64,000 nucleotides of DNA, from the NCBI GenBank assembly GCA_964035545.1, contig OZ037766.1, positions 10,530,722 through 10,594,721 on the forward strand. Direction: 5' to 3'. Under the pieces are notes generated by a model. It searched no databases and was not told where the DNA came from. It worked only from the letters and a program-made list of their open reading frames with translations. This DNA is from Bugula neritina (Eukaryota > Animalia > Bryozoa). Below, piece after piece: positions 3,401-59,800 of the stretch. Position 1 is the first letter of the stretch. Every line of letters starts with the position of its first letter. The position numbers and the translations under genes are program-made.

Positions 3401-6400
3401 CGTGAATATAATTGAAGTAGCCTCTCAATATTGTTTTTTTTATATTCAGATATCAGATTTGTAACATACATATTATATTCTTTTAGACAGTTTATTTTGG
3501 GTTTGAGCTAATATTTTAATCAACACTATATAGTTTCCCCAGTCAACCACATTAAACACTCACGCAAGTTTATAGTCACCATCCCTATGAGAAAACCCCT
3601 GATGGAAGGGTTTTTTGTTAAATTGAACTAAGGACTTATTCAGATGAGGCACAAGAGCAATTATGACTAGATGCTCTTCCTAGCATCACCAATGGCCTTT
3701 GTTTGGGGCTCGAACCCATGACTTCGTGCTTACTAGGCAAACGCTCAAACCTCTAGACCACGGCTGCTCCCTAACCACATTAAACTTATTGTAAAATCAA
3801 CACCAAAGTACTTTGAATTTATAATGCATTTTTATGATGAACTATATAGTTGTTTTATTATATAGGATATGAAACATTGGTGTATGTTTGAGTATCTTCC
3901 CTATTTCACACAAGCTCTATACTCACCCAGTAGGACAAGTACACGTAAAGCTTCCAGCTACGTTCTTACAAACCCCATTTGAACATTTATTCCCTGATTC
4001 ACATTCATCTATATCTGTAACAGCATAACAAGTTTATCTATTGCAGACGTGTGTCTATATAATATACAATATAAATGTCTATAAGCAAATACAGCACTTC
4101 ACAGATCAAGACAGTTCTAGCAAGGCACTTTGAAAATAATTTTTAAGTAAACTCCTTTGCTATTTGTATTATTTTTGTTGATAAGCAGTCTAATCAGTGA
4201 TACATCTATATAATCTTTCACCGCATATATTCAACATATCATACAGAGGGCTGCAATATACTCTATATTTTTACTTATATATTCGTATAGTGGATTCTAA
4301 CCGACACAGAGAGATTCCTTGCCAGGGGGGTTTCTATATCCCCGGTCACATATACATCTGTATCCAGTCCTTTGAAGGTTTTGGCAAATACCGTTGGAAC
4401 ACAAGTTGGAAAATAGAAGGCATTCATTGATGTCTAAAAGTTCAGTACATACACAGTAAACAAACTGACATTTTAAATAAAAAGGTAAATGTAATGATTT
4501 CAAATAATATGTTATCAATAACTATGGTAATGATTCAAAACATAAAATCATCATATTGAAAATGATATTTGCAAATATGAAGAATAAGCTAATTGATATT
4601 ATAATTATTTTAGTGTTCATAGCTGAAGGATCTTAATTTAAAGCATTGGCAATCTGCCAAAGAGTAATAATATACAAAAAGCTTATAATATAATGATGAC
4701 TCATTGAATTGGTGAGAAAACGTTCAGAAGATTATTCTACTAAAATATTTTCTTTTATACATGAAAATGCTTTTGTTTTTCAATTCTAGAATGATAGCTG
4801 TAGCTGCATAAGTGTTTTGAAAATTTATAAATCGTTGTTAATGGAAATCAATTTTTGTAACATTACTTTTCGCAAATCTATTTTCTAATAAAAACTTCAA
4901 TATATTGGTACTAAATTAGTATTAAACTTTAAAATTCCACGAAGTCGGCATCTAACAATGAAATCTAAAATTTACGTTGTATGTATAGCTTATAACACCT
5001 CCACCTTGCAGTTGGAGGTCATAACATCACAATGTATTGTATTATGTACATATATATAGTCTATGCTACCTTCTCCATTGCTGTCAACTCCAGCATCGTT
5101 ATAGCACAGTTTCCGGTAATCTGCAGTACCTCTTGCAGGACACAGAGAGTGAGATCGCCCCCAACACATCTGCGCAGTTGCAACAGCAGTTACAGAGTCT
5201 ATGACATAGGAGCAACAACACTGTGACCTCAGGACGCTCTGAAATAAAATGTATTATAAAGATCTTTAGATAATTGATTTGAATTGTATTCAACAGTTTC
5301 TAAGAACAACATAGAAAATCTAATTATCAGCTACCTTCACAATTCCACATAAATTTATCCAAACTCCATTCTGTATGCCCAGCAAATAATATATTCTGTA
5401 GTCATTTTAGGAAGAAAAAAGAATATAAAGTTGCCTTGGAACTAGGGTCAGTGCAGGTGTTGTCTGATAGAATGGTTTTAAAACACAAGTCTCGTCTTGT
5501 TTCCTGGCACCTGGTACCATCAGCGTGCAGGACGAAGCCATCGTCACAGGAGCACTGAAATGAGCCTATTGTGTTGATACACTCTCCGAGCTCGCATAGA
5601 GGGTCACTTGAGTCCAAGCATTCATTTATATCTGTGCAGAATATTCAACATCTTCAATTATGGTTTTGAGATTTATGACTTTTTCCTTCAAGTGGAAGAT
5701 CATGTATGAAAGTAATTAAATAACGTATTTGATGAGCAATCTAAAATTATTAAATATGAATGCTTACCAACACAAGCTTTCTCATCTCTCGTTAGTCTAT
5801 ACCCAGGATTACACGCACATCTATATGTTCCGTCCATGTTGAAGCACTGTCCGTTTTGGCATTTAGATGCTTGGTAGCATTCATTAGAATCTAAATTTAC
5901 AATTTGACACACTTTACATCGATGGAAATTGTATTATTCTGTTGAACTGAACTCTATTTTCTTTTCTCATAGTTTTCAACTGATTAGGATTGAAAGAACT
6001 TCCAACAATTTGCACATCTGCACAAGTTGAAGGAGATCTTCATTAAGAAATACAGCTTATTAAACCATTTCTAATCAACTTTATATTACCATAAAAACTG
6101 ATTTAATCATATTATAGCTATTCATACTATAGAAAAATACTAAAAATTATTATTATTAATATCAAACCGATGCAAAAAGTTCCATCAGGTGAAAGTTCAT
6201 AGCCCGGGTTACATGTACACTTGTAAGAACCAGGGCTGTTCTCACACTTTCCATTAGCACAGATACTGTTCCCACTTTCTCTACATTCATCTATGTCTAA
6301 AAGTGAACGAAATATACTCACTACTTCATGAGTATGCAAAAACACAATTGGAGATCGTTCACAGCTGCAAATATAAATATAGAAGGAGCAATCAAACTCA

Positions 6401-9694: not shown

Positions 9695-12600
9695 GTATAT
9701 ATATAGGCAGCTACATAACTTTCATATTCAGCGTCATGATTCTTTAAGGGAAGCACAAAGTGTTTTATATAAATTTCAAGGCATTATAATCATAGGTCAT
9801 ATTAAATAAATTTTTTAACTTTTAGAATTCTAGCTAGTAATTTAATGTATATTACATGGCTTTCAAATTTCTTCTACTTTGTACCATCCCAAAGTAGAAT
9901 TTTCAGTTCTTTGATCTTTTAGAATCCAACAAATTAATGCAGCATCAAAATTTAAGTGCAAAACTGTTCTAAGCTTTTTTATGTACTAAAGTACACATTA
10001 TTATATTAATTATCTGTCTCTAATATATAAAGATATAGAGGTATATAACTACAGTACAGAAAAGATCAATTACTAATTATTTGACAATGGTTAACCCTAG
10101 TGAAATGTGAACTCCACAAGTGTTGTGCCGTGGAGCTTAAAACTTAGTTTACACATGATTAACTGGACACCTTATAATAAATACTTGCTATATAACATAT
10201 CTGTTTCTCACAGCTAGACTGGCATTCTTTGAGTTTACAGTTGCCATAACAACACATAACATTATAGGGCTAATCTCAGCGGGGCCCATATATCCGACAC
10301 ATGCATACATACGCGTGAAGTGCTCTCATTTACACAGTATTGATTTTAATCTCTTGAGTAAATTAGGGCCCAAAATACAATTCTATAGAGTTTTGGGCCT
10401 CAGCATAGCTTTAAGCTGTTATGTGAACATTCTTGAGTGGATCAGGCTGTACATAGAGTTACCCAAATGCTATGGTGTGCTCATTGGATTATCTTGTGTT
10501 ATGACTTGAAGCACTATTACATTACAGCTTGCTGTTTACTCAAATCTTCCAATGTTTTATTTACATAGGGCCCAAATTACAGCAGGAAACTAGGTGAACA
10601 TTTAAAACCGTGGTCATACAGAATGTAACTAATAATTTATATAAGTTCTTACATAGTTATATTATTTAGTTATATATGCTGATATTGAAGTCTGAGGCAT
10701 TAGAGCAAAATTTAGTGCAGTTGGAGCAAACCTATAACTACTTCAGATATAGGCAAGTTGCTATAGAATTGTCGCTGTAAGAGTAAATCAAACTCCAATA
10801 TTTTATTTTCTATACTCACAAGTTACACAGGCATTTGTTAGGGGGTCCTTAACTGTTCCAGGTGCACATTCGCATATGTAGGAGCCAATTGTGTTGGTAC
10901 AGGTCCCTCCAATACACAAGCCAGCAATAGCTGAGCACTCATCAATGTCTATGCAAGTGAACAAGGTGAGAGTAAAAATTATGGCATTGGTTCAACAATA
11001 GCACTATATTGCATTAGTGAAAGAGAATAATATTGATCTTGCTACCGAAAAAAAATTAGGTTCCACCGAGACTTGAACTCGGATCGCAGGATTCAGAGTC
11101 CTGAGTGCTAACCATTACACCATGGAACCACGTTGCTTTCAGTGCTGTAATTAGCTATTCAATTCTTACAACTAAAATGCTTTTGTCTTACCTATAATAG
11201 TTATATACAATAATTTTGGACAAGACATAGATTGTCATTTTTTTATAATATCATCTACTGACTACCATTACAATAATCACATTTAAGCATCGGATAAAAA
11301 ATATGAATCACTTATATGATATATTAATACTTAATACAAATTCATTCAAATAATACCATTTTATTTAAAAAACGATCAAAAATGGCATTATCCTATACAT
11401 ATAAGAAGTGCAATGATTTTAATACTCTCTGTTAGCAAAGTTATAGGTAATGTCATTATAACACAATGTATACATGTATAATGAATAGCCTACAAAGTTT
11501 TGAAAATAAGATATTGTATTTATTATATGCATAGTAAAAAAAACATGAAGTAAGGTGCAAATTTCAAGTTTACGGAAAGTTCCAACTTCTCTGTTATTTT
11601 CAAAACTGACATGCATGATTAATCTCACACCAAACCAATAATTAAGTTTGAAATGTATTTGAACTAGAATTATTTGTGAAAAATTTTCTATGCCTGATAT
11701 TCTATAGTCTATACTTTGCACTGTCAAAAGGCTCAGTATAAACATAATGCCTCAACAAATATGTAAGTAAAAGTTTGACGGACAATTTCAAAGGTATCAA
11801 ACATGACTTTTTAATGGAATACATAGGAGCAACATTGTCACATTTTTAAATGAAATTGGCAATACATTTGTCATAACCTAAAAACAACTTCTAGCAGAAA
11901 AAGTAATATTTCTTTCAGCTTTATAAATTTAGCAATAATTATGGTTTTCATACATACCTTGACAATTGTCTTCTTTGGCAACAAAGATGTAGCCTCTTCT
12001 ACAAGGATGAGGATTATCTGGACAGCGGGAGCATGGTATACCCCACCCTACCCCCAGAGTAGCACAGCACAGAGACCTGGTGCATTTTATTCCAGTCAGA
12101 GCACCTAAACACTGATTACCATTTATCTCAGTGAAACATGGGCCCACCTTGAGAACTCCTAATAGAAGAACAGAACTGTCGAAATAACAAAAACCGAAAC
12201 TTATATGAATGTCCAGCAACACGTCATATATTACATTTTGTTTAATAAAATGTGGCAATTTATTGCAACAGACATATATTATAATTATAAAAATTATACA
12301 CAAATTGTTATAAAAATGTACATAGTTTGAAAATATAATAAATATTTTTGATGCATTTAACAACTGTAATATTAGTTGTCTCATATATATGTTCTCTTTT
12401 AGTTACTTAATTTACTTACTTTATTTACTCTATTCACTGAAAAATAATTTAGTAAACTGAAACAAATTGAATGCAAGACATTATATAACATACTGAGCTA
12501 TTACCTGTAAAAAATTATATAACATACAGAGCTACTACCTGTAAAAAATTATATAACATACAGAGCTACTACCTGTAAGACATTATATAACATACAGAGC

Positions 12601-38400: not shown

Positions 38401-41400
38401 TTGTATTGTTTGAACAATAGTTTTATCAACAGTTAATTACTTGTTTTCTAATTGCATACAATTGATGTCAATTGAAATTTTAACAACCAACTGTATACTA
38501 ATAGATTCCATTCTTTCACTCCTCTGTAAATAGTCTTTGTACAGTAGTGGCACTTGACATATGACTGTGTACATCAGCTTCTATATTGTGATTTAGAGTT
38601 GTCCTATCTTAGTAACCATAAACCTTGTAATCATTATACAGCTATTATTATTTCTACAGCTACTGTAATATTATGGTTGAATGAACCAGTGCATCATAGT
38701 TCCGGCTATTTGTAGATGCCATTTCATCACAGGCAAGATATCGTATAAAGAAAGCATTTACTCACTGGGAAAAATACACTTGTGTAAAATTCGTGGAATA
38801 TAATCCAATTGAGCATAGAAATTACGTGATTATACAGAAAGGTCAATGGTGTGCTTCAAAGCTTGGCATGGCTGGTGGACCTCAACCACTTTATCTCGCT
38901 TTAGGATGTTTGGTGAGTAACAAACTGTAGAGATAAAACAACTAATCTGTAAGCTTTTATTTGCAAGTTAAAGTTGGCTAAAATTCAAGATATTGTTTGG
39001 TGTGAATCACTGTAATGAGTCTAGTATGTATGTTAGTGATACTAAAACTAAAGCTTATGTAGCATAGCTATGCTCATGGTATAACGTACCACTTAAGTGA
39101 TGACAACTCCATTAACTTAGTTCTTATCAGTATAATTATAAATTTATAACCAATTAATATTCATTCATAATTAGTTTTGGTTTCAATTTGCAACATTATG
39201 TAATAACTAAAAGGTTGTTGTGTATACTATTAGTTACTTGATCCTGTTGATATTTGCCAAATGTTTATAGTGCACTGGGGACATTTGTTGACTGAAGGAT
39301 AGTGTCAATATATAGTCCTGCAACTAGTTTAGTAAATTCTTTTCTTACAAGGCACAATATCGATTCACTATAAATTAACTTTTTAAATAAGCTACATGAT
39401 GTCTTGGATATCTATCTAAAGGCATTATGTAACAAAGAAAAATCAAACTATTGTTAAAAATATTACTTGGCAATATCTCTCCTGAACAATATAGAATTTT
39501 CCTAATAAATATTTCTTATGTTTTAAGGCTCTTACTGATGGTATGGGTTACCATCACTGCCTGCCAGCTCATCATCTACACTTTCATTATTTATTTTCTG
39601 GTACTTCTATTTAGGATACTGGTACTATTATCCATGAGTTGGGACACAGTTTGGGCTGGGTGCATGAACAAGCTAGACCTGATAGAGACGAATACGTGAG
39701 GTAAACAATGATACAGCTTGTATATATTTATTTTCGTTGTTGAAAGGTTTCAAGTGTTCTGTTCAATCAAAAATATTATTTGAAATATTAGAACTTAAAG
39801 TATGACAACTGATCTCAATGATGATTGAAGACTTTGCTCTCCATATTTTAGCAATTCAGTTTTTCAGCCAATAACCTTAAGTTGTGTTATTGGATTATTT
39901 GTAAGTAAGCTGCATTGGATCAATGCCAAAGAATATTTATAGAACTTATTGAATGGTGGCTTACAAAATATAACTACATTATAGCCAATTTGTTGTCTTC
40001 ATTAACTTATGTTTTGTTGTACTGGTGTATATATGCTTATAATGTATCTATTATGAATAGGGTTGGCCATGCTCACTAGAAAAGCCAAACATCCATTAAC
40101 ATTGCACAAACTCAAAAATATATATTGCAATTCTTTTATACAGTCCTGCAAAACATTAAAATAATTTATCATTAAATTGGAACTGTGTTATTATCATCAA
40201 TAATAATTATTGAACAAAATTTCTATTTATGTTTATAGCATAAAATGGAGTCTAATCTCACCCAATTACAAGTCTCAGTATGTTAAACACGACAATGACT
40301 ACATCAATACATACGGTGTACCATATGACTATGGCAGCATTATGCACTACCCCAGCTATGGTGAGCTGATTACTAACGATCCGTCTCAACAAAGCAAAAT
40401 CGGGCAAAGAAATAGACTGAGTTTCAATGACATAAAACTCGCTAACGTCATGTATAATTGTGCAGGTAAGTTTAACTTTATCTATAAACATTTTTGTAGC
40501 ATTTTAGTAGTAGAAGCTAATTAGGTTTAGGTGACAAGAGGCTAAGTGATTGTGTTGAGCTCTCATGTAGGGAAATTTGTGTGAAATTAACACAGCTGGT
40601 CAAAGCAGCTGTCAATGTGACATTGTGATGTGACTCTCTCAAACTATAAGTTTTGCATGCAGTGTTGAATTACTACGTTTACAATAAGTCATATAATGAA
40701 ATTGGCTCGATTGCTTGTAAATACGTAATTTTAAACCTGGCCAACCAATCAGAGTTTGCCAGTTTTAAAAATGTCTAATTATTCAAGAGCTTTGTATATT
40801 TAAATATGTGCTGTGTTGAGTGATGGTCGTTATGCTGCTCATGCAGGTGTTTTCAACCATCTTAGGTTAGAGAAATACAGATTTTATGAGTAAACCAGGA
40901 CCATAATTTTTAAGTTAAAGGCGGTAAGCTTCCAGGTTATTTATTACATTTGAGCAAAAGTTTGCATGCTTTTCAACTGTTTTATCAGCATTTTACCCAA
41001 TTTCTTATACGAAAACACTACAAAAATGTAAGTAAAAGTGGTCATATTAGGTGTCTTAGACTTGCCCAGACTTGCCCGCGAGCGTGCCCTCCGTGACGTG
41101 GGGATGGCAAAATAGCCCAATTGTAGCGTGAGTTTATATCGCGTAAAGTTATTAAGAAGCGGGTTTGTCACAGATTCTCGTTATTCGTAGCTCAAATCAC
41201 ATGAATGTTACTCTTCGGGCGGCTACTAATAACTAACGTTAGCTACGCAACATCAAGAAAGGTAACTAATTTAACTGTTTTCAAATGGACTATTCCATTT
41301 CGCTAGTTTGTAACTTGCTGTAAATCACAAAATAATTATTTTCCCTATTTTAATTTCAATTATCATGTCGACCACACTACCAGAAAATTACTCTTAAATA

Positions 41401-44400
41401 TGCAGTAAATGATGATTTTCAACCGTTTTGTGATGAATTATAGGTTAGTAGTTGTCTACGTAAAACCAAGTTTTGAAATTTGTAACTGAATCAGTGAATC
41501 ACAGTATCAGTATGAGTGTCACTAGTCTAACTCTATTTCTATGACATTGACTCTCACTCTAAGTCTATGACTATCGCCTATTGGTGAACTATTATTAATA
41601 ATATTCAATGGTTATATTTATTAATACAGTAATACTATTATTAGTCATAATGATAATCATATGACAGTATCAGTATGTTAATGTTACGGAGCAGGATCAG
41701 TTTCGAAACTAATACTTATACTTATAGTTATAATATTAGTTATAACTATAAGTATAACTATAACTATAAGTTATACCGATAGCTATATTAATATAAATAT
41801 TTATATTCATAGTAATACTAATAGCAAATGTAATATTAATATTATTATGTTAATAGTTATACTTGTAAGTTATAATATAAAGCAAACGACACAAGTATTA
41901 ATTTCAATTTGAACTGCTGGTCTTGAAATGAAAAGTGAAATAAATATAAATAATAAAATATAAATTATAATAATTTAATTATACTAATACTTATACAGAA
42001 ATATAATTATAATAAATTTATAAAACTTAAACAACTTTTAATTTAAGGAACAACTTTAAATACAAACATAAAGATAATATTAAATGATTATAATCATAAT
42101 GATCATAACAATAAATATAATTATGATTCCAATAATTATCAATATATTATATAATATTTATTGCAAGTGAAAGTTAGTTATTCTCCGCCAGCTGCATGAA
42201 TGTGACTGGTAAATTTTGTAACCTTTGGCAGTAATAACTTTGTAGCATAAATTAGACACATTTTTATGAAAATACATAATTTTAATGCTATAGCTGCTAG
42301 TAATTCTAATGGGTGTAATAATATTACTTTCACCAGCATTAATTTTTACTTTGTTCATCTCTTCATAAAGCATTTTCTAAATCCTTTTTTGAATAAATAT
42401 ACATATAATGTGCTAAATAGATTACATATGTTGGGGTTCTTCCTATACTGCAGCTCAGCCTACACTCCCCCCCCCACAAATGTTCCTAAACTACTAGCTT
42501 CATCAGGATACAGATTGATGGAGCTGTATTGATAAAAACTTCTCTTTTTAGCAGTAGAGGCATCATGAAAAAAAAGGCAAGTATTTTACTAAATATGAAT
42601 GCGGTTTTTTACTTCTACAAATTTGATAGCCTACACTATTCTATTTAAATGGAAACTGGTCTGACATAATGTGTCTGCAATTTATTAGTTATAATATAGT
42701 AAATACTATGCGGGCCTATAGATCAAATGGCTCAAAAAAAAATTAAATAAAACATTACACAATGCTGTATTTATTAGCAATGTGATACTTAGCAACTAAT
42801 TTCACATTATTTTTTGCAAAGTTTCATATATCTACATATGTTTGTTCAATTCAGTGTTCTGAAGTAGAAGGTTCCAACAGCAGGGAAAAGCCTTGAACAA
42901 GATATTATGTTCTACATCTCCAACTCATTTTAACTTTGCTGGTCAGTGCATTGTGTATCTGGAGCATAGTTTTGTGTTTTTAAGTAGTCCATCAGATACC
43001 TTTGTAGATAGTAAAGATTAAAATGTTTGTGCAATGATGTCCATAATGTTGAACTGATTTATTGAAACTAAAACTGTTCTTAATTATAACAAAACTTGAC
43101 AATCTTTACATAAAGAATAATGTCCTATAATCTATCTTCATTGTAAACAAAATTAGAAAGTTCCACACCAGCAAATTGTTAATCATCATCTGTAGGTGGA
43201 AGACGCGTGCACTCAGTTATAAAGGCAAGCTGACAGTGGTTTTCTTTGCCTTCTATGAAGATTTGGAAAGAGCCAGAAAATTAATACTCTATAACTGCAA
43301 AACCATGTTGTAGTGTCTTATGTTATTGATTGAATCACCTAAAAGAAAAATTGTTGTATCATTATAATTTTACTGTTAATGAATTAGATAATCTACTTAT
43401 CTTGGTAAATATATTCAAGAACAAATACTATAGTGTAACTCAGTTTTGGTTATGTGTATGCTCCTTAAGCGATTTTACAGCAGATATCAAACTATATATT
43501 AGAGACTGATATAGGAATTACATTTAAGCTAACCATGATGATGTAAATAGCTGTTGTATGTGACTTCGAGAACTCTGCTGGCCATGTCAGTTCAATTACA
43601 CCAGGGTGATCTGTTACGAATTTCATGTCATTATTGAAATTCAGCTTTTTCAAGTGCCTCTTCACAACTCTGGCAGCATTCTGACTGCTCCTTAGCTTTC
43701 TGCACCTGAAATTTCTTCTACTTGCACCATTCTTCTATTGGTGGAATGTTAGCCTATAACAAACAGGTGTACCAAAGCTAAAAAAAATATCTAATTCAAT
43801 GCACTAGGATATTATTCAACTCATTTAAATTTAATATATAGCAGTAAAACAATCACATAATTGTATTTATTTTATCAGCTTTACTTTACAAAGCTGAACC
43901 ATATAATTTAGTAACTTGTCACCATAATAAACTTTGTACAACATACAAATTGAAAACCTGATGTGATCGCTTTTTTAATAGAATATACATCAAAAACATG
44001 TTACTTTGATAAGCGTGTTTATAATAAAAGTATTAAACCAGTTAAAAAAAAATTATTTTGTTGTGTAATGGATCACAAAACTAAATCATTTTAAACCTGT
44101 AGCTCAATGTTCCTCAAGCAACGGGCTGCTATGACTAATTAATTTTCTATCATTGCATTTGACTGTTCTACTTATAGTGTATTGGCGAGTTAAAATTATT
44201 GGTAATTTAATGTATATTTTAGCTACCTCTGTACAATCAATGTCATAGTAATATCAATTAGGTTTTAAATTTCACTGAGTTTATAGTAAATTATTGCAAT
44301 CGGTACATAACATTTGGCTAGTTGTCTAGTTCATTAAATAACCATACGAACTTAAATTTACAACATGAAAAAACACACAAAGCAAAATTAAAATAATCAT

Positions 44401-47400
44401 ATTATGAACCAATGTAATTGATAAGCGATAATGCTGTTGTAAAACATAAATTATCAAATTGAAATAGTTATTATTACTATTAGTATTACTATCATTATAA
44501 CAACTATAATTATTATTAGTATTACTATTACTATTAGTATTAGCACTAGTAGTAAAAAATGAGTAGAGTTCAACATATACAATCTAGCTCACAGTTACTA
44601 TAAAAGTAGAAGTAGAACTTTTAAAACTATTAGTATTATCTCCATCATTATCAGAACTATGAGTAATACTAGTACAGTACTAGTAGTTGTACTAATAGTA
44701 ATACTAGTTATCAATACTAATAGACAATAGTAATAGTATCACTATGAGTATGAGACTTGGGCTGGCAGTGATTATCACTATCAGCATCATCATAGTGATA
44801 GTCAAAAGTTACAAGAATTAGAAGCCATATTCATATGGATATTCTCATTGAGTTATGCACAGTCATATTCATAGTAATAGTCAATCACTGATTGAGTTAA
44901 TGTCATAGTGATACTCATACTCATAATTAATTTGTACGATACTCATACTCATAGTGATAGTGATACGTCACCGTGAATTTCAATTTAATAATAATTTTAA
45001 TTTAATATTAAAGTGATATTAATTATTATCATTGAATCATTCATTGTATTTGTTGCTAATATTATGTCTTACTCTTAGTCTAACAGCAGCTCTATGAAGA
45101 AGTTAAACATAACTGATAACAAAACACATTTAAAAAATAATACTGTAACAATCAATATAATGCATATCAATATGAATATGCTAGCAACCTAATTTTCAGC
45201 CCACTTCATTAACTTTCTGTGCAGTATTGTGAATTGTGATAAAATGAATTTATTAATGGTGACCTTGACATCTTCGTCCAAATGCCTTTCACGTCAAGCC
45301 CCGAACCAATTTGTAAAAATTTTGGATTTTTTACTTTTGATTATTTTTTACGAAAAGAGCTTCAAAATAAATTTAAAAAAAAGTGAGCTGTTGTCCACAT
45401 GAAAAGAAATATATGAGTTAATTTTCTAAATTCAGAAAGTTACCAGAGGATCACAATATTTTTTTTAAAAAATCTTCATTTTCACGACAAGCTCTATATA
45501 TTAATATAGAAAAATAGAAGACAACTCTACTTTCAGATTTTTCATGTGCCACGGTCACGTCAATCTCAGTGCTATTAACACATATATTTTAATTCATTTT
45601 TTCTGGTATATTGAGTTGAGATTTTTTGTATATATTTTGTGAATGCAACTAAAAAAGTATGATCTTTTAATTAACAGTAATTGATTTTATCAAAATAACC
45701 TGGATGCCTACGATGTTTAAAGTATAGATTTTGTTGAGTATTTGTTCCTTTGGTTTGTTCATATAAATATCAACTAATTTGACTTATGCTATCTATGAGT
45801 CAACAGATGTGGTAATAGTAAAACAAGCTAATTTCTGTACTCAAAGAGATTTATTTGTTCATAATTGCTCGAAAAAAGGAAAACTTCGTGAAGTGCTTTT
45901 AGAAATGCCATTGTCACATTCTGAGTACTCTTTTCTTTATTTTAGTCTAACCAAGATAAATATTTTTTTTATAACTGCATGTGTCATTTTTTATCAGGTG
46001 CAAAAAATTGTTACTAAATTAGCTTTAACCTTTGTTCACCGAGAGCTTATCCAGGTGAAGATGTATATAAGTGTCTTGAGTCTAGTAGTTGTGAGATAGA
46101 CATTTAGCCTGAAGAATTCATCTCTCTGTTATAATTATTATAATTGCTTAGTGTGATGAAGCTTGGGGGAGTGATATCACGGTGCTATTTTGAAACATGG
46201 CATTTATGAACTTTGTTGACTGTGCACTAACACTTTCAATTAAAGTTTGAGTTGAAATACATTTTTTCTTTAATGAAAACCTGAGATTAATGGATTTTCA
46301 CATCTAGGTCATTGAAATGTTTTTCTGGGAATCAGTCAATCAACAGAGTAAACCTTTATTTAGGCAATACATGTTCACATTCCCATGGTGTTCAATGTTT
46401 GTGCTAAATCTTTACATGTGTGCTCAACATGTATGAATAACTAATTTTTTTCACCCGTTCCAACAGGATATTTTGCTATTTCTAACCGAAAAGATCTGTT
46501 CTAAATGTATTTTGCTCTCAGATTATTTGGTATGGCAAAAAATTGAAATTATATGCAATCCATAAGTTGTACACAAGACGTATGCGTATTATCTGCCTGT
46601 TTAACAACAAAACTTATTCTGTCATTTCAAGCATATGATAATTGATAAAGGTCACATGATTCCTAGAGATGTGCAGGATGCATGCTTACTTAAGTCATTA
46701 CATAATTAAAGCTTATTAGTTGTAATATTTAAAATTATTTTATTTTATTCTAATTTAAACTAAATATCTAACTTAGTGTAATAGTTGTATAGAATATATA
46801 TTGCATCTGTTTATAATTTAATATAAACACTTATAGTTGTTATTGTTGTGTTGCAGCAAGATCGGAATGTGATACAAAGAAGTTCAAATGTATAAATGGA
46901 GGTTTTGTTGATCATACATGCAAGTGTGTGTGTCCAGATGGAAATAGCAGGTCATGTACAGTATCAAGTACTGGGTACAAGTACACACCCAATATTATAG
47001 ATGAGAAAACGACTCCTAAATCTGAAGGTAAACATGGCGATTTGCCAACATACAGTTTTACCGATATACATAGCAATATATGTAGTGAATGCTTGTTTAC
47101 TGTTTGTATATATTGATTTACTGATGACATGTTTCACTCTAAAGTTCAGTCACATGTCTTTTCTTGTGTTTTACAAATATTTGAATTAATCCTGTGAACC
47201 GAACTAAGATAATCAACATGCATGCGTATAATATGTAAAACATATATTAATAATTACATTATACTAACCGTTTGAATTGCCTACTAACCTACTCTTGCAT
47301 GCGTATATTTACAGTGTGTAGCCCTTGGGTTGTGTACGATAATGCTTACATTCCCGGATATAATGAAGACGTTGGGTTTTCTTTATCCATTGAAGAATGT

Positions 47401-51289: not shown

Positions 51290-51431
51290 AACACCGTGAT
51301 GTTCACTGTGCGCAAATTAGGTCACGTGATCGGCAAATTAATAACGGTTCAATGGTATTCTCTACGGTCAAGTGCCAGTGGTTACGGTCGCAACACGAGC
51401 GATAATTACAATAGTATTTATAATCATTAGC
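51290..51431 (+). promoter_or_regulatory. Candidate DNAJC14 promoter and non-coding first exon
   Basis: CpG-dense island, GTCACGTGAT (USF/MiT-type E-box) at 51321-51330, donor AGC|GTGAGT at 51431/51432. The coding exon begins with an acceptor at 56849, upstream of the ATG. Confidence 0.6.
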
Positions 51432-51589
51432 GTGAGTCCGTATCTACAGAATGCATTGATTCATGATTGTCATTGTATTACAGTTTACAACTACACAATT
51501 AGTATTACATGGTCAAATGGAAACTACTTGTTTAACCGTATTCTAAACAAAGCGCATGGCTTTTCAATGTTTAACATATAATAATTAGT

Positions 51590-53640
51590 GAATTATATGT
51601 GAACTGTGAAGTTGCATAGTGATAGTGATACTGATACTGATAGCTACAACTACAAGTACAATAACAATCACAATCAGTGAATCACAATGCAGATGCTCCT
51701 ATAAATGGTAATGTTGAGTTTCAATATATAGTTCTACTTAGTCTTAGGTATACTTATACTTATAGTTATAGGCTACAACATTAGGATTAATATGAATTTT
51801 AATTTTGATTAACTTCAACTTCAAGTGGTTTCAGTTTGATTAAAAACATGATGATCAAGTTCAAGTTATCCTTACGAAGTTTAAGTTGTACTCAGTCATA
51901 CTTATACTTATACTTATAGTTATAGCTATACTCATAGTCATACTCATACTGATGGTTATAGTGATTTGATACAAGTTTAGCTATAAGTTTAAGTTAAAGT
52001 TATACTTTTACTTAATCTAGATCTTATACTATTACTATTAGTATTACTATTAGTATAGTTATAGTTATACTTAATCTTATGTCTTATAGTGATGACTGGT
52101 GTAGTCATATTCAGAGTCATATGCAGTTAGTGTTCATCAAAAGTCAAAGTTGATTATTAACTCTAAGTTCAAGTTTAACGGTTAAACCTAAGGCCAAGCT
52201 AAGGCCAAGGGTGATACTGATAGTAATACTCACCAATCACTTTTACTTAACCTGAGTTTAACTTCAAGTTTAATTCGATGTTACTGCTAGTTATAAGCCT
52301 GAGGATTATGGTATTGGTTATCATCATTATTACTATTAGTATTAGGTTAATTTTCATTTTTAAGCAACCTCAGCATGCTCTAGATGATAATTTATAAATA
52401 TAGCAGTTATGAATTATAATTTGGGTAGTTGAAATAGTAGTTGTACTTGTATTCTCTGTCATAATCATAATGATGATATAAAATGAATAATAGAGTAATA
52501 ACACTAATAGAGTAATGCTTATACTATTACTATTAGTATTAATATTACTATTTGTAATACTAATAGAGTAATAGTTATAGTATTAGTAATATTAATAGCC
52601 ACAATCATACTCATACTCATAGTGATACTGATAACCCTAGTGTTAGTTACTATCACTATGACTATGTCTATAGGTATGACCTTGACTATAATCTTGAGTT
52701 GATGTTGTTTAATTATTTAAAAAAAACATCATTATCATGAAATCTCTCACAAGAAGTAGAAGTAGGACTATTACTTTATTTAGGATGTTGTTACACTCAC
52801 ACTTATTATTATTATACCCTTATAATGTAGTTAAAAGATTGTTATTAAGTCTAACAAATCAATATTACATTCAACACACTTTTACTTTACCTGATCTTGA
52901 GCATCTAGTTAATATTTCTATTTCTAAATATTGTAACTTAATCAGTAAAGCTATGACTAATGACTATCAACATCAGATTTATATTTGATAAAGCATAATA
53001 AATTTAGCCTTCATCATTAGGATTATGGTTAGGGAGCAGCCATGGTCTAGGGAGTAGGGGTTAGAGCGTTTGCTTAGTGAACATGAAGTCATGGGTTTGA
53101 ACCCAGACAAAGGCCATTGGTAATGTTAGGAAGAGCATCTAGTCATAATTGCTCCTGTGCCTCATCTGAACAAGTCCTTAGCCCGATCTAATAAAAACCC
53201 TTTCCATCAGAGGTTTCTCACAGGGATTATGGTTAGCACTATGTGACTGTGTGTATATCAGCATGATTATCATTATGATAATATTTATTGTATTTCATAT
53301 TGTGAGTATTACATATTGATAATTATTAAATTTAATGATCAAGCTTATACTTACTAGTACTAATACAGTTATAGTAATGTACTTTATAGTACTACGATTA
53401 AAAGTAAGACTAAGTATTCAGCTGACAACTAATTACTAAGGAAGTAGTCTACTAACTATAAGTAATCAGTGATTACCAACATTAAGCATAATCACGATGA
53501 TGACTACTTGCAACCCTTATGATGATTACTTTATTTGTAGTATTATCTATATAATGGATTATTTGATAGAAAGTTATAGTTACAGTTATAACATTTGAAA
53601 CTGATGAAGTAGTAGTAAAAAGTATTAGAATTAGCATTGT
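51590..53640. repeat. Degenerate 6-bp-periodic (ANTNNN)n tract D (longest; interrupted by SINE copy 2)
   Basis: e.g. AGT GAT AGT GAT ACT GAT ACT GAT; AGT CAT ACT TAT ACT TAT ACT TAT AGT TAT AGC TAT ACT CAT AGT CAT ACT CAT ACT GAT; ACT TCA ACT TCA AGT. Confidence 0.85.
53032..53226 (+). mobile_element. tRNA-derived SINE, copy 2 (same family), in DNAJC14 intron 1
   Basis: Aligns over about 190 bp with the reverse complement of 3582-3772 (e.g. GGAAGAGCATCTAGTCATAATTGCTC is identical). GGATTATGGTTAG is repeated at 53020-53032 and 53224-53236. Confidence 0.88.
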
Positions 53641-56600: not shown

Positions 56601-56873
56601 ACTGAACAAGTGGCACTTTCTGAAAACCATGGCATACCTTTAAACTGGCCAGATTTAACTTAACCACAATTGAATATATTTTTTAATCATAATAACTTGA
56701 AGATATTGGCTAGTTGATAGCCTGCAATGTTCTACTTACAATTAAGTTGAATAGACACACCTTTGGTGAAAATTCAAGTATAACTTTGGTAGCTATTGTG
56801 CTCTGTACTAACATATTGTCTTATGCATATTATTGTTCATCTCTTACAGGTATTAAGCCGTTAGCACGGAGTG

Positions 56874-59800
56874 ATGTCCGAACCAATGACAGAAGAGGAT
56901 CTGCTGCTTAGTCAGCATTCTTTTGATATTGATAACTTTTTAAAGGATTGTGACGTTGCTAATGAGTTCCCTATTAATGTCAGTGGGCATTCAGGTTTGC
57001 TGGGACCAACCAACATATGGTCCTCAACATCCAGCTCCACCGCTTGTAATGGATTTTCTTCTTTCCCTGGCCTCAGTGGCAGATACCCTGCTGAATGTAA
57101 TAATACTCAGTGGTCTACTTACACCCAGTCCCTGCAGGGCAAGGGGTCCCCCTTGAAGGACGGCTCCTTCACACCCCTGAGTCAGCCTGGGTCTGAGACG
57201 GAGAGTGACAACAGCTGGAGGTTTGACTCTGTCAGCTCTTTGGATTTTGGCAAATCCTCAGCTGATTGTGGCCACTATTACCCTGATGCAGCTAGCCAGT
57301 GGGGCAGGAAGGACGAAGATAGCAATGGCATATATGATCCGTTTAGAGGAAGCTCAGTGATAGATGACCTTGGCAGCATGCACATGATGGGTGCCGGAGA
57401 TCGAGAGAAATCACCTCTGAAGCGTAGTCAGTCAGCCAATGTTAGACCCACGTTTGCTGACGTGATGAAGAAGCCATCGTCACCAGGCAGCGAGCCACCA
57501 CCAACTCCAAGTCTGAGCAGCGAGGACCCCGTCTATGGCAGTCAAGACTCCCTCAACAGTCTGCAGGAGAAGAAGATAAAGCCGAAAGTGTTCAGACCGG
57601 CTCAACGCCGCCACGGTGGTTACCATGTACCACTTCCCATTAACCCGGACTCTAAGTACGGGCTTGATGATTTTGAGGTACATGAGGTTGGAGCTCAGCG
57701 GCCTGAGAGAAGTTTCAGTTGTGGTGATTCTATTGGGTGCTCACCGTCGCCAACCACAACGGTAGGCTCTGCAGGCGAGGAAGCTAGGGCTAAGCTCTGT
57801 GTGAATGGCAAGATCTTAACTGGGCAGTCTGGCTCAGCATCAAACTCGAGAGGGAAAGCCAACTGGTTTGATCCTAAGAGAATCTTTCAAAATGGTGGAT
57901 CCAGAGCGAGATCAGAGAGTGTGCCATGTGACACCATCCTCAACAACAACGTCTCGGCCAGGTTTGCTATGAATAGTTATTTATGGTATGAAATACTTGA
58001 GTTGTAGCAGGTGTGGCCGCAAATGCATTCACTGTATTGTTGGTTGCTCTCCTGTAAAATGGTTATTTGGAGTTGGTGGTCTCAGCCATAGGAAAGATAA
58101 CAACTAGTATGCAGTTTAGTAGGCAGGCAGCCTATTTGATAAATCACAATTTTATTTAAATTAACATCAGTAAGTGAAGGGGTTTGTACAGCTTGGCTGG
58201 TGTATTGTGGTGGAGTATGGTTATAATAATTGATCTCTCGAGTAGTTTTTGGTGAAACTAAGTGGGTATTGAATACAGTATTTTTTACTCTTTGTATTCA
58301 GAGCAACTTAGATTATAAAACAAATGTGTTCCACTTAACAGTCAAAGGATAGATTTTCAAGTTTTGCTTCAAATAAACAGTTTCCCCAGTCCAGTCTGTA
58401 CGAACCTGCAAAACATTCATGCCAATGTAGCTCTTACTACTTCTTAGCTAGTAGAATAATCAATTGTCATGATGTCATTGCTGCTTACATCCATGATGCA
58501 TGTATAGTTTGTATGTACATATACAATTATATAATACATAATCTTAGAGCTAATTACAAGCATATTCATATTGCTATTCGCGTTCAGAACTGCATGTAGT
58601 GTGGTAAGATTGACTACTAGTCGCAAGTATTCAATGTTGGAGTTTGTCACTTTTCAGGTCTTCTGGAGTCAAGACTGGAAGTACTAGGAACGAGCCTTCC
58701 TATATAAATAATCTGCACGCAGGAAATAACCCCAAGTCAGCCAAGCAAACCAACACAGATAGAGCTAAGCCATGTAAGTGAAATTGAGGTCAACTGATGA
58801 TTTTTTAGTTTTAAAATGCTTCATTTATGCTTTATTTGTTTTGGGTGATAATAGTCTTAGATATTAATATATTATCCCTCCATCCTCTGTCAGTTGCGTC
58901 CAACGGTACGGTTAGCATAGCGTTCATTTCACAATTTTTGAAGTGCAAAGTTATAACTTATTGTAATAGTTATGATATTGTTCTGGAGAAACCCTTGGTT
59001 TCTTGAGGGATTCAGTATGCTGAGCCAGTTTCTGCAACAAGGTAATATTTGTACTAACTTATAGGTTCTTGGAAATTTATAAAATAACATTTATGAGCAG
59101 TAGTGGAGAAACTGAGATAGCCTAAGTTCCTTAATTTTATTATAAAATAAACGAATTTGTTTCTAGGTATGATTTATAGAATCTCTCTTAGGCCATCTGT
59201 CTAATATCTAAGTTATCTGCTGACTACTAAGTTTCTTCTTAAACTGCCAACTATTTACTCATACTGGCTGAACATTTTAGTCATCCTCATATACTGGCAT
59301 TTTGCTCAGCAGCTAAACTGTAAACTAAGTTAAAATTGATAATTTGTTGCTGAGCAGCATGATGGGCGATACATGTGCAAGTTAAAATGCTAATGGTACA
59401 TAGAATTACTGTTTTTTACATAACCATTGGTAAATCAATTGCCTTGACTGATCTATCTAAGGGTCACTGCTATGTTTCAATGAAATATATTAATATAATT
59501 GCACATAATATTGTTCCTATTTTGGTCTATGAATCTCATTACATTTCAAAATGGTCGGTTAGTTAAATTCCAAATAAATCACCGTGAGTCAGGCTAAGGG
59601 AAAATTGTGTCAGCTTAAAGAGTTGGTCACTGCTGTTGCTGCCTTTTATTGAAAGTCTAGTGAAAACATGTAATCATGACTCCAACTTCAACTCTTTCCA
59701 AAGTTTACTATTTGAATTCGCACTCACTAAGCTCATGATGGCTAGCTAAACAGACATCTAGTTTGACAGCCACTGCCTATAATTTAAACTTTGTTAAGAT

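Follow-up and report, generated by a model that had tools for sequence, protein, structure and literature searches.

The window, a 64,000-nucleotide stretch of the Bugula neritina genome, holds a fibrillin-like gene (minus strand, to ~15 kb), a uridine phosphorylase gene, an astacin-PAN protease gene, and DNAJC14 (Table 1). Two tRNA genes lie inside fibrillin introns (1996-2067 and 11058-11129), and a 159-bp tandem duplication of 99% identity was found at 20346-20667. The 5' part of DNAJC14 was mapped with RNA contigs from two runs, which do not fix the exact transcription start. Its CpG-rich core promoter contains an E-box at 51322-51329. Because the pieces of one RNA contig map to 51466-51690 and then resume at 56849, exon 1 was taken to end at ~51707; the donor (51707/GTAATG, with GT at 51708) is inferred from these mapped pieces, the joint itself not being listed. 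The tract of interest, a lattice in which ACT or AGT recurs every 6 bp, therefore begins inside exon 1. The lattice makes up the last ~120 nt of this exon, and the most 5' position covered by RNA lies ~150 nt from the tract start. The original prediction had placed the start ~160 bp past the first-exon donor, which does not hold, as a donor at 51431 was unsupported in both RNA runs. The tract is interrupted by a SINE that is common to both lineages compared below and is covered by RNA contigs at very high depth. A further copy of this abundant SINE type lies near 3581-3777.

An astacin intron carries a young transposon, flanked by TTAA target duplications at 40915-40918 and 45717-45720; the empty site has a single TTAA. 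The genome holds at least 30 near-complete copies, and of the 30 scored, 21 were full-length at 97-100% identity and nine were split or older. No long ORF, no transposase (DDD/E or accompanying KolX), and no Pfam or Atlas match was found in the element, which may be non-autonomous. It shares the TTAA target duplication with Kolobok (PMC9587614). Of the 5'-RR/YY-3' termini of Kolobok, the left AG of this copy fits and the right GT does not. An older subfamily (90-94%) has ~550 bp extra near 42155.

Table 1. Coordinates of the features in the window
Feature	Position	Strand	Remarks
Weaker tract	21590-22360	.	After CpG patch 21200-21500, the putative start of uridine phosphorylase
TIR DNA transposon, young, 4.8 kb	40919-45716	.	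In astacin intron; absent from sibling assembly L200
Tract in transposon	41480-42150	.	Inward of left CpG-rich promoter-like patch 41040-41260
Tract in transposon	44450-45080	.	Inward of right, weaker CpG patch 45280-45550
DNAJC14 CpG-rich core promoter	51300-51440	+	CpG o/e 1.2-1.4 vs 0.37 in the window; inter-lineage divergence 1.2% vs 7.5% elsewhere
DNAJC14 non-coding exon 1	51443-51707	+	RNA contigs X12 record 1 and X2 record 23; 5' end at or before 51443
6-bp tract	51590-53640	.	Stacked short duplications with complemented junctions; peak at 51600-52800
6-nt indel vs sibling lineage	51687-51692	+	Fits hairpin footprint AATGC-AG-ATGCT, not an exact duplication
SINE with tRNA-like head	53033-53223	+	Interrupts tract; 53020-53032 and 53224-53236 are its 13-bp target duplication
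DNAJC14 exon 2	56850-57998	+	ATG at 56874; RNA; clusters with KAF6039217.1 (Bugula neritina); DnaJ domain downstream

Periodicity of the tract and its position behind promoters

With the SINE removed, 63 AST pairs at lag 6 were counted in 51590-53640, compared to 6.8 +/- 2.6 (maximum 17) in 500 dinucleotide shuffles, and the signal had harmonics at 12, 18, and 24. This bears out the predicted recurrence of ACT/AGT. The varying spacers and phase slips that had been described were also confirmed, since the 63 pairs are spread over 25 phase segments, as was the strand symmetry (ACT 254, AGT 308). The tract is indeed no ordinary tandem repeat: TRF reported short arrays only, among them short exact hexamer runs, exact triplets were in the minority, and head-to-tail copies of one consensus unit, which define a tandem repeat or satellite, were not found, neighboring units avoiding identity. 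In contrast, ANT is not a privileged motif. The periodicity of TNA (125 vs 30) matched it and that of T[C/G]A (32 vs 2.2) exceeded it, which indicates a general 6-nt rhythm centered on odd palindromes. Inverted repeats with a 1-nt loop numbered 121 vs 33, and the dyad counts (64, 55, 44, and 64) showed none to be dominant. A coding repeat (Ile-Thr or Ser-Tyr-like frames) was ruled out by the stops and phase slips throughout this mostly intronic tract, an RNA family by the two tRNAs being the only RNA genes in the window, and an RNA-level motif by the absence of sense-strand bias.

The same texture had been described for three other places in the window (Table 1) and noticed nowhere else in it. 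In the window, the signal is confined to these four places, and two of the tracts, 41480-42150 and 44450-45080, lie inside the multi-copy transposon. The DNAJC14 tract lies outside this element and has no termini. Across the 216-Mb genome, the 6xAST pattern had 49,008 matches per strand vs 5,918 for the reversed control, with simple (AGT)n repeats counted in. MANF and HSPA14 share one bidirectional promoter with a tract on either side; these tracts, like those of ClpP, TMEM38, and NAA50/ODF3L, lie on the gene-facing flank of CpG-rich patches (these five loci were named from translations or Pfam). At least 6 CpG per 150 bp were found in a flank of 10/13 tracts, compared to 11% of random places. 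HSCB, which closely follows DNAJC14 (L071:10780-11900), has a tract and no clear CpG patch; it may use a promoter of its own or be co-transcribed.

No tract was found in the fibrillin and astacin 5' regions, nor near four Ras-family 5' coding regions, the true gene starts of which may lie elsewhere. A preference for housekeeping genes is suggestive, because the sample of ~8 genes with tracts and 2 without is small and was partly chosen by pattern. The possible marking of germline or broadly expressed genes has this same sample as its basis. Neither the donor-to-tract direction (399 vs 329, weak) nor the E-box count (58 vs 24, un-normalized and partly repeat-derived) was taken as support. At least two further multi-copy families show an E-box followed by a tract (C6:11441569, C8:1736554, and C9:1566290; C1:28590791, C4:9095368, and C9:3467108), and these are probably transposon promoters. 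A later intron of NAA50 carries, at ~1.7 kb from the promoter, an array mixing (AGT) and (ACT) triplets that shows the C/G flips as well (L019; C1:189357-189554).

Beyond B. neritina, a full 6-bp tract lies beside a CpG-rich patch in a distant species (L194), the DNAJC14 exon of which is 43% identical and which has 42% GC. Another tract follows a donor in this species (L127), and DNAJC14 intron 1 contains a weak patch (L065). The species is probably a bryozoan. In two other relatives (L068 and L197), DNAJC14 intron 1 lacked a tract. The pattern scan of metagenomes returned mostly unrelated simple or coding repeats, and a human gut metagenome sequence (L108) was excluded from all analyses.

Junction rule, divergence, and ongoing indels

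Tract units follow a scheme in which a 5-nt core is followed by a junction base and the same core again, the junction usually being the complement of the neighboring base. Such units at lag 6 reached 52 per kb in tracts vs ~2 in the background. For X-core5-j-core5-X with X = C/G, j was the complement in 44 cases, the same base in 11, and another base in eight (p=9e-6 vs coin). This lean toward the complement was seen in 11/12 tracts; the DNAJC14 tract taken alone gave 6:4. For the core TATTA, genome-wide counts were 11,410 for the alternating forms (C-G-C 5,659, G-C-G 5,751) and 3,468 for the exact forms (C-C-C 1,603, G-G-G 1,865), a ratio of 3.3:1. C/G swaps made up 38-54% of the mismatches between neighboring hexamers, compared to 5% expected by composition and 4% of ordinary substitutions. 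Runs at lag 6 ended in complementary mismatches in 64% of cases vs 39% in the background, with a sharp drop above 5 nt. Simulated 7-bp hairpin footprints gave complementary ends at 0.47-0.68 and the same drop in run length, whereas exact slippage gave 0.24-0.34. The AST density of the simulated footprints was half of that observed (15 vs 29 per kb). Simulated slippage yielded 0-1 complement junctions vs 50-194 same-base junctions. As slippage predicts the opposite of what was observed and independent flips reach 1:1 at most, duplication and flip must be one event. The junction rule thus rejects both slippage and a free C/G centre.

Public B. neritina assemblies (L200, L061, L071, and L205) contain a lineage ~7.5% diverged from the window, which made evolutionary tests possible. 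Divergence was 7.5% in tracts and in other non-coding DNA alike, compared to 1.2% for the core promoter and 3.7% for exons. Transitions at AST centers were not reduced (6/144 vs 70/1294, p=0.69), and 590 bp of the DNAJC14 tract could not be aligned between the sibling lineages.

Among tract indels of at least 3 nt, 11/23 were multiples of 6 vs 17/133 (p=3e-4). Some of them are exact duplications or 6n deletions. Eight tract indels were cleanly resolved; six of these were non-exact, and all six fit a 7-bp hairpin footprint (joint chance ~2e-4), with 7 bp as the sole target length to do so, in a test that is small and post hoc, includes one polarized case, and leaves ~15/21 inter-lineage tract indels unclassifiable. 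L071 and L072 carry the +7 indel beside HSCB (target CTCTAGG), whereas L205, a haplotype that differs by only 6 substitutions over 18 kb, and the outgroup lineage both lack it. It is therefore a derived, very recent insertion. The +8 indel in MANF intron 1 (CATTTA-GTG-ATTTAC), in which both border bases are complemented and one P-nucleotide is added, segregates within the lineage. A third haplotype of this lineage (L201) left two 6-nt HSCB indels unpolarized. Indels of these sizes were observed at ~1.3 per kb per 1% divergence, and the simulations need 1.5-2.5; the rate is thus of the order required and is consistent with a steady state. The tracts are being generated now. A mutational process coupled to transcription starts, one of the options first put forward, is supported by this ongoing generation and by the CpG-rich promoter patches that adjoin the tracts.

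Origin of the tracts

The first 0.2-2 kb behind the inspected gene starts consists of hundreds of tiny duplications in which one base is switched to its complement, a scar of the type left by hairpin-cutting transposons. This promoter-proximal DNA thus appears to document repeated cutting at promoters and not to be a regulatory code. From its position, the junction rule, the lack of constraint, and the ongoing insertion, we infer that the tracts are probably stacked footprints of a putative hairpin transposase with a predicted preference for promoters and a predicted 7-bp target. In this mechanism, the transposase would be of the cut-and-paste type, leave hairpins on the flanking DNA as in hAT-like chemistry, duplicate a 7-bp target, and prefer roughly S-W-N-N-N-W-S. 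Its element would land at distances of 0.15-2 kb past active Pol II promoters and be excised later. Repair would then join u1..u6 to u2..u7 with the complement of a border base in between, usually adding 6 nt and sometimes 7-8. Each scar would be a fresh target, so that scars would accumulate in register, while point mutation and deletions would erode them.

Ac/Ds footprints are palindromic insertions centered on the complement of the border base, and hAT footprints (Ac/Ds, TcBuster) resemble the tracts in the retained target duplication, the complemented border base, the odd palindromes, and the microhomology joins (PMC5873905). The hAT element TcBuster also favors TSSs (PMC3499496), a preference that the Bugula tracts share. 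Consistent with footprints of this type, the tract indels duplicate adjacent sequence, and complementary junctions with P-nucleotide palindromes prevail (44:11 and 11,410:3,468, and 6/6 non-exact indels). There are two differences. hAT targets are usually 8 bp, whereas the canonical 8-bp TSD was not found here, only 7 bp fitting all the indels; hAT families with a 7-bp target are known (PMC12730594), and there are hAT5, 6, and 7 groups. Furthermore, hAT footprints are known as single scars, whereas in Bugula hundreds would have accumulated at many promoters, forming periodic tracts of kb length. Intact-looking hAT ORFs are present in the genome, and three hAT ORFs (C1:30462367, C3:28905230, and C5:1593917) are identical. 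The ~150 kb of sequence examined contained no TIR element with a duplication of 6 or 7 bp. Deletions from a pre-existing tract can imitate footprints. P-type excision leaves element-end remnants, not hairpin scars, and only 4 P-type matches were obtained in the genome. The palindromic target of Galileo (P superfamily, 7-bp TSD, GTANTAC) resembles the reconstructed S-W-W-W-W-W-S (PMC4168063).

The scars could also have formed without a mobile passenger, through a host or domesticated nuclease making staggered, hairpin-capped cuts near active promoters, or through polymerase fold-back, a possibility that we regard as doubtful. In the fold-back variant, a polymerase would fold back for 1-2 nt and, within the same coupled event, re-anneal at a point 6 nt upstream (a Pol theta-like template switch). 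Such a route explains the junction rule equally well and accounts for the failure to find an element in ~150 kb. It also accounts for the similar tracts in the distant relative (L194 7180-7680, L127, and weakly L065), which imply long persistence. The fixed 6-7-nt step and the palindromic S-W..W-S target, however, are those of transposase target cutting, and we know of no host repair route with such a step. In a more specific form, which appears improbable, a domesticated hairpin-forming nuclease with no mobile passenger would act across bryozoans, and the tracts would mark active 'self' genes and be acquired by transposons.

That the tracts are selected arrays, serving either as a landing pad for a dimeric or polymerizing protein or, like PATCs, to license expression in the germline or of housekeeping genes, is in our judgment quite improbable. 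This idea draws on the consistent position behind promoters, including transposon promoters and both sides of bidirectional ones, and on the same position in the distant relative; moreover, weak aggregate selection would escape the divergence test. In contrast, substitution equals that of other non-coding DNA, the AST centers are unprotected, part of the DNAJC14 tract is unalignable, no dyad dominates, two relatives (L068 and L197) lack the tract in DNAJC14 intron 1, and the complemented junctions of new insertions are left unexplained. No 10-bp A/T periodicity was found in the tract either, with an AA/TT autocorrelation of -0.01 at lag 10 and 0.17 at lag 6. The protein-landing or PATC-like code offered as an option in the original prediction is therefore unsupported. 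Cryptic simplicity, i.e., hexamer slippage with point mutation and with or without independent palindrome flips, fits the short exact hexamer runs and the exact or 6n indels, but is largely refuted by the alternation excess, the near-absence of complement junctions in simulated slippage, the 1:1 ceiling of independent flips, and the share of C/G swaps, and is very improbable.

Comparison with known sequence classes

The tracts resemble C. elegans PATCs in that both evolve fast, do not code for protein, show a periodicity, and lie close to the 5' regions of genes. PATCs have been traced to Helitron minisatellites remodeled by transcription-coupled bias (2026 preprint, 10.64898/2026.08.08.743475) and have an anti-silencing function (PMC4947018). 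However, the period of PATCs is 10, whereas that of the Bugula tract is 6 with no lag-10 signal, and A/T runs are depleted in the Bugula tract (10.9 vs 21.7 per kb). Short-period, low-complexity DNA near TSSs also includes promoter microsatellites and cryptic simplicity, from which the Bugula tracts differ by the lack of a consensus unit and the avoidance of identity between neighbors.

No description of such tracts was found in a literature search of incomplete coverage. They are a real promoter-proximal sequence class, undescribed in the literature searched, and the best reading is that a known process operates here on a new scale. Transposon footprints are familiar as isolated events; in Bugula they apparently are the main builder of the DNA just inside many gene starts, at a pace that lets them segregate even between haplotypes <0.2% apart. 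If the transposase reading is true, the tracts are a readable record of the promoters that are open in gamete-making cells, a promoter-targeting transposase with a 7-bp target is predicted, and no selection is needed for a periodic promoter signature to arise. Such DNA would also be a test case for later co-option, as proposed for PATCs.

Three observations concern other sequences. In the ACT/AGT patches of the distant relative (L065:7690-7800 and L127:600-1250), the 6-bp rhythm is accompanied by a 4-bp component, which may reflect a second target length. Several small contigs of the assembly (C33, C66, C101, C110, C160, C204, C230, and others) gave best Ras-family matches with in-frame TAA/TAG, as in the ciliate code, and are likely ciliate contigs. 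A short 6-bp ACT/AGT patch was seen in an early CCDC93 intron of another animal (L081:430-900), a lead that possibly takes the pattern outside bryozoans.
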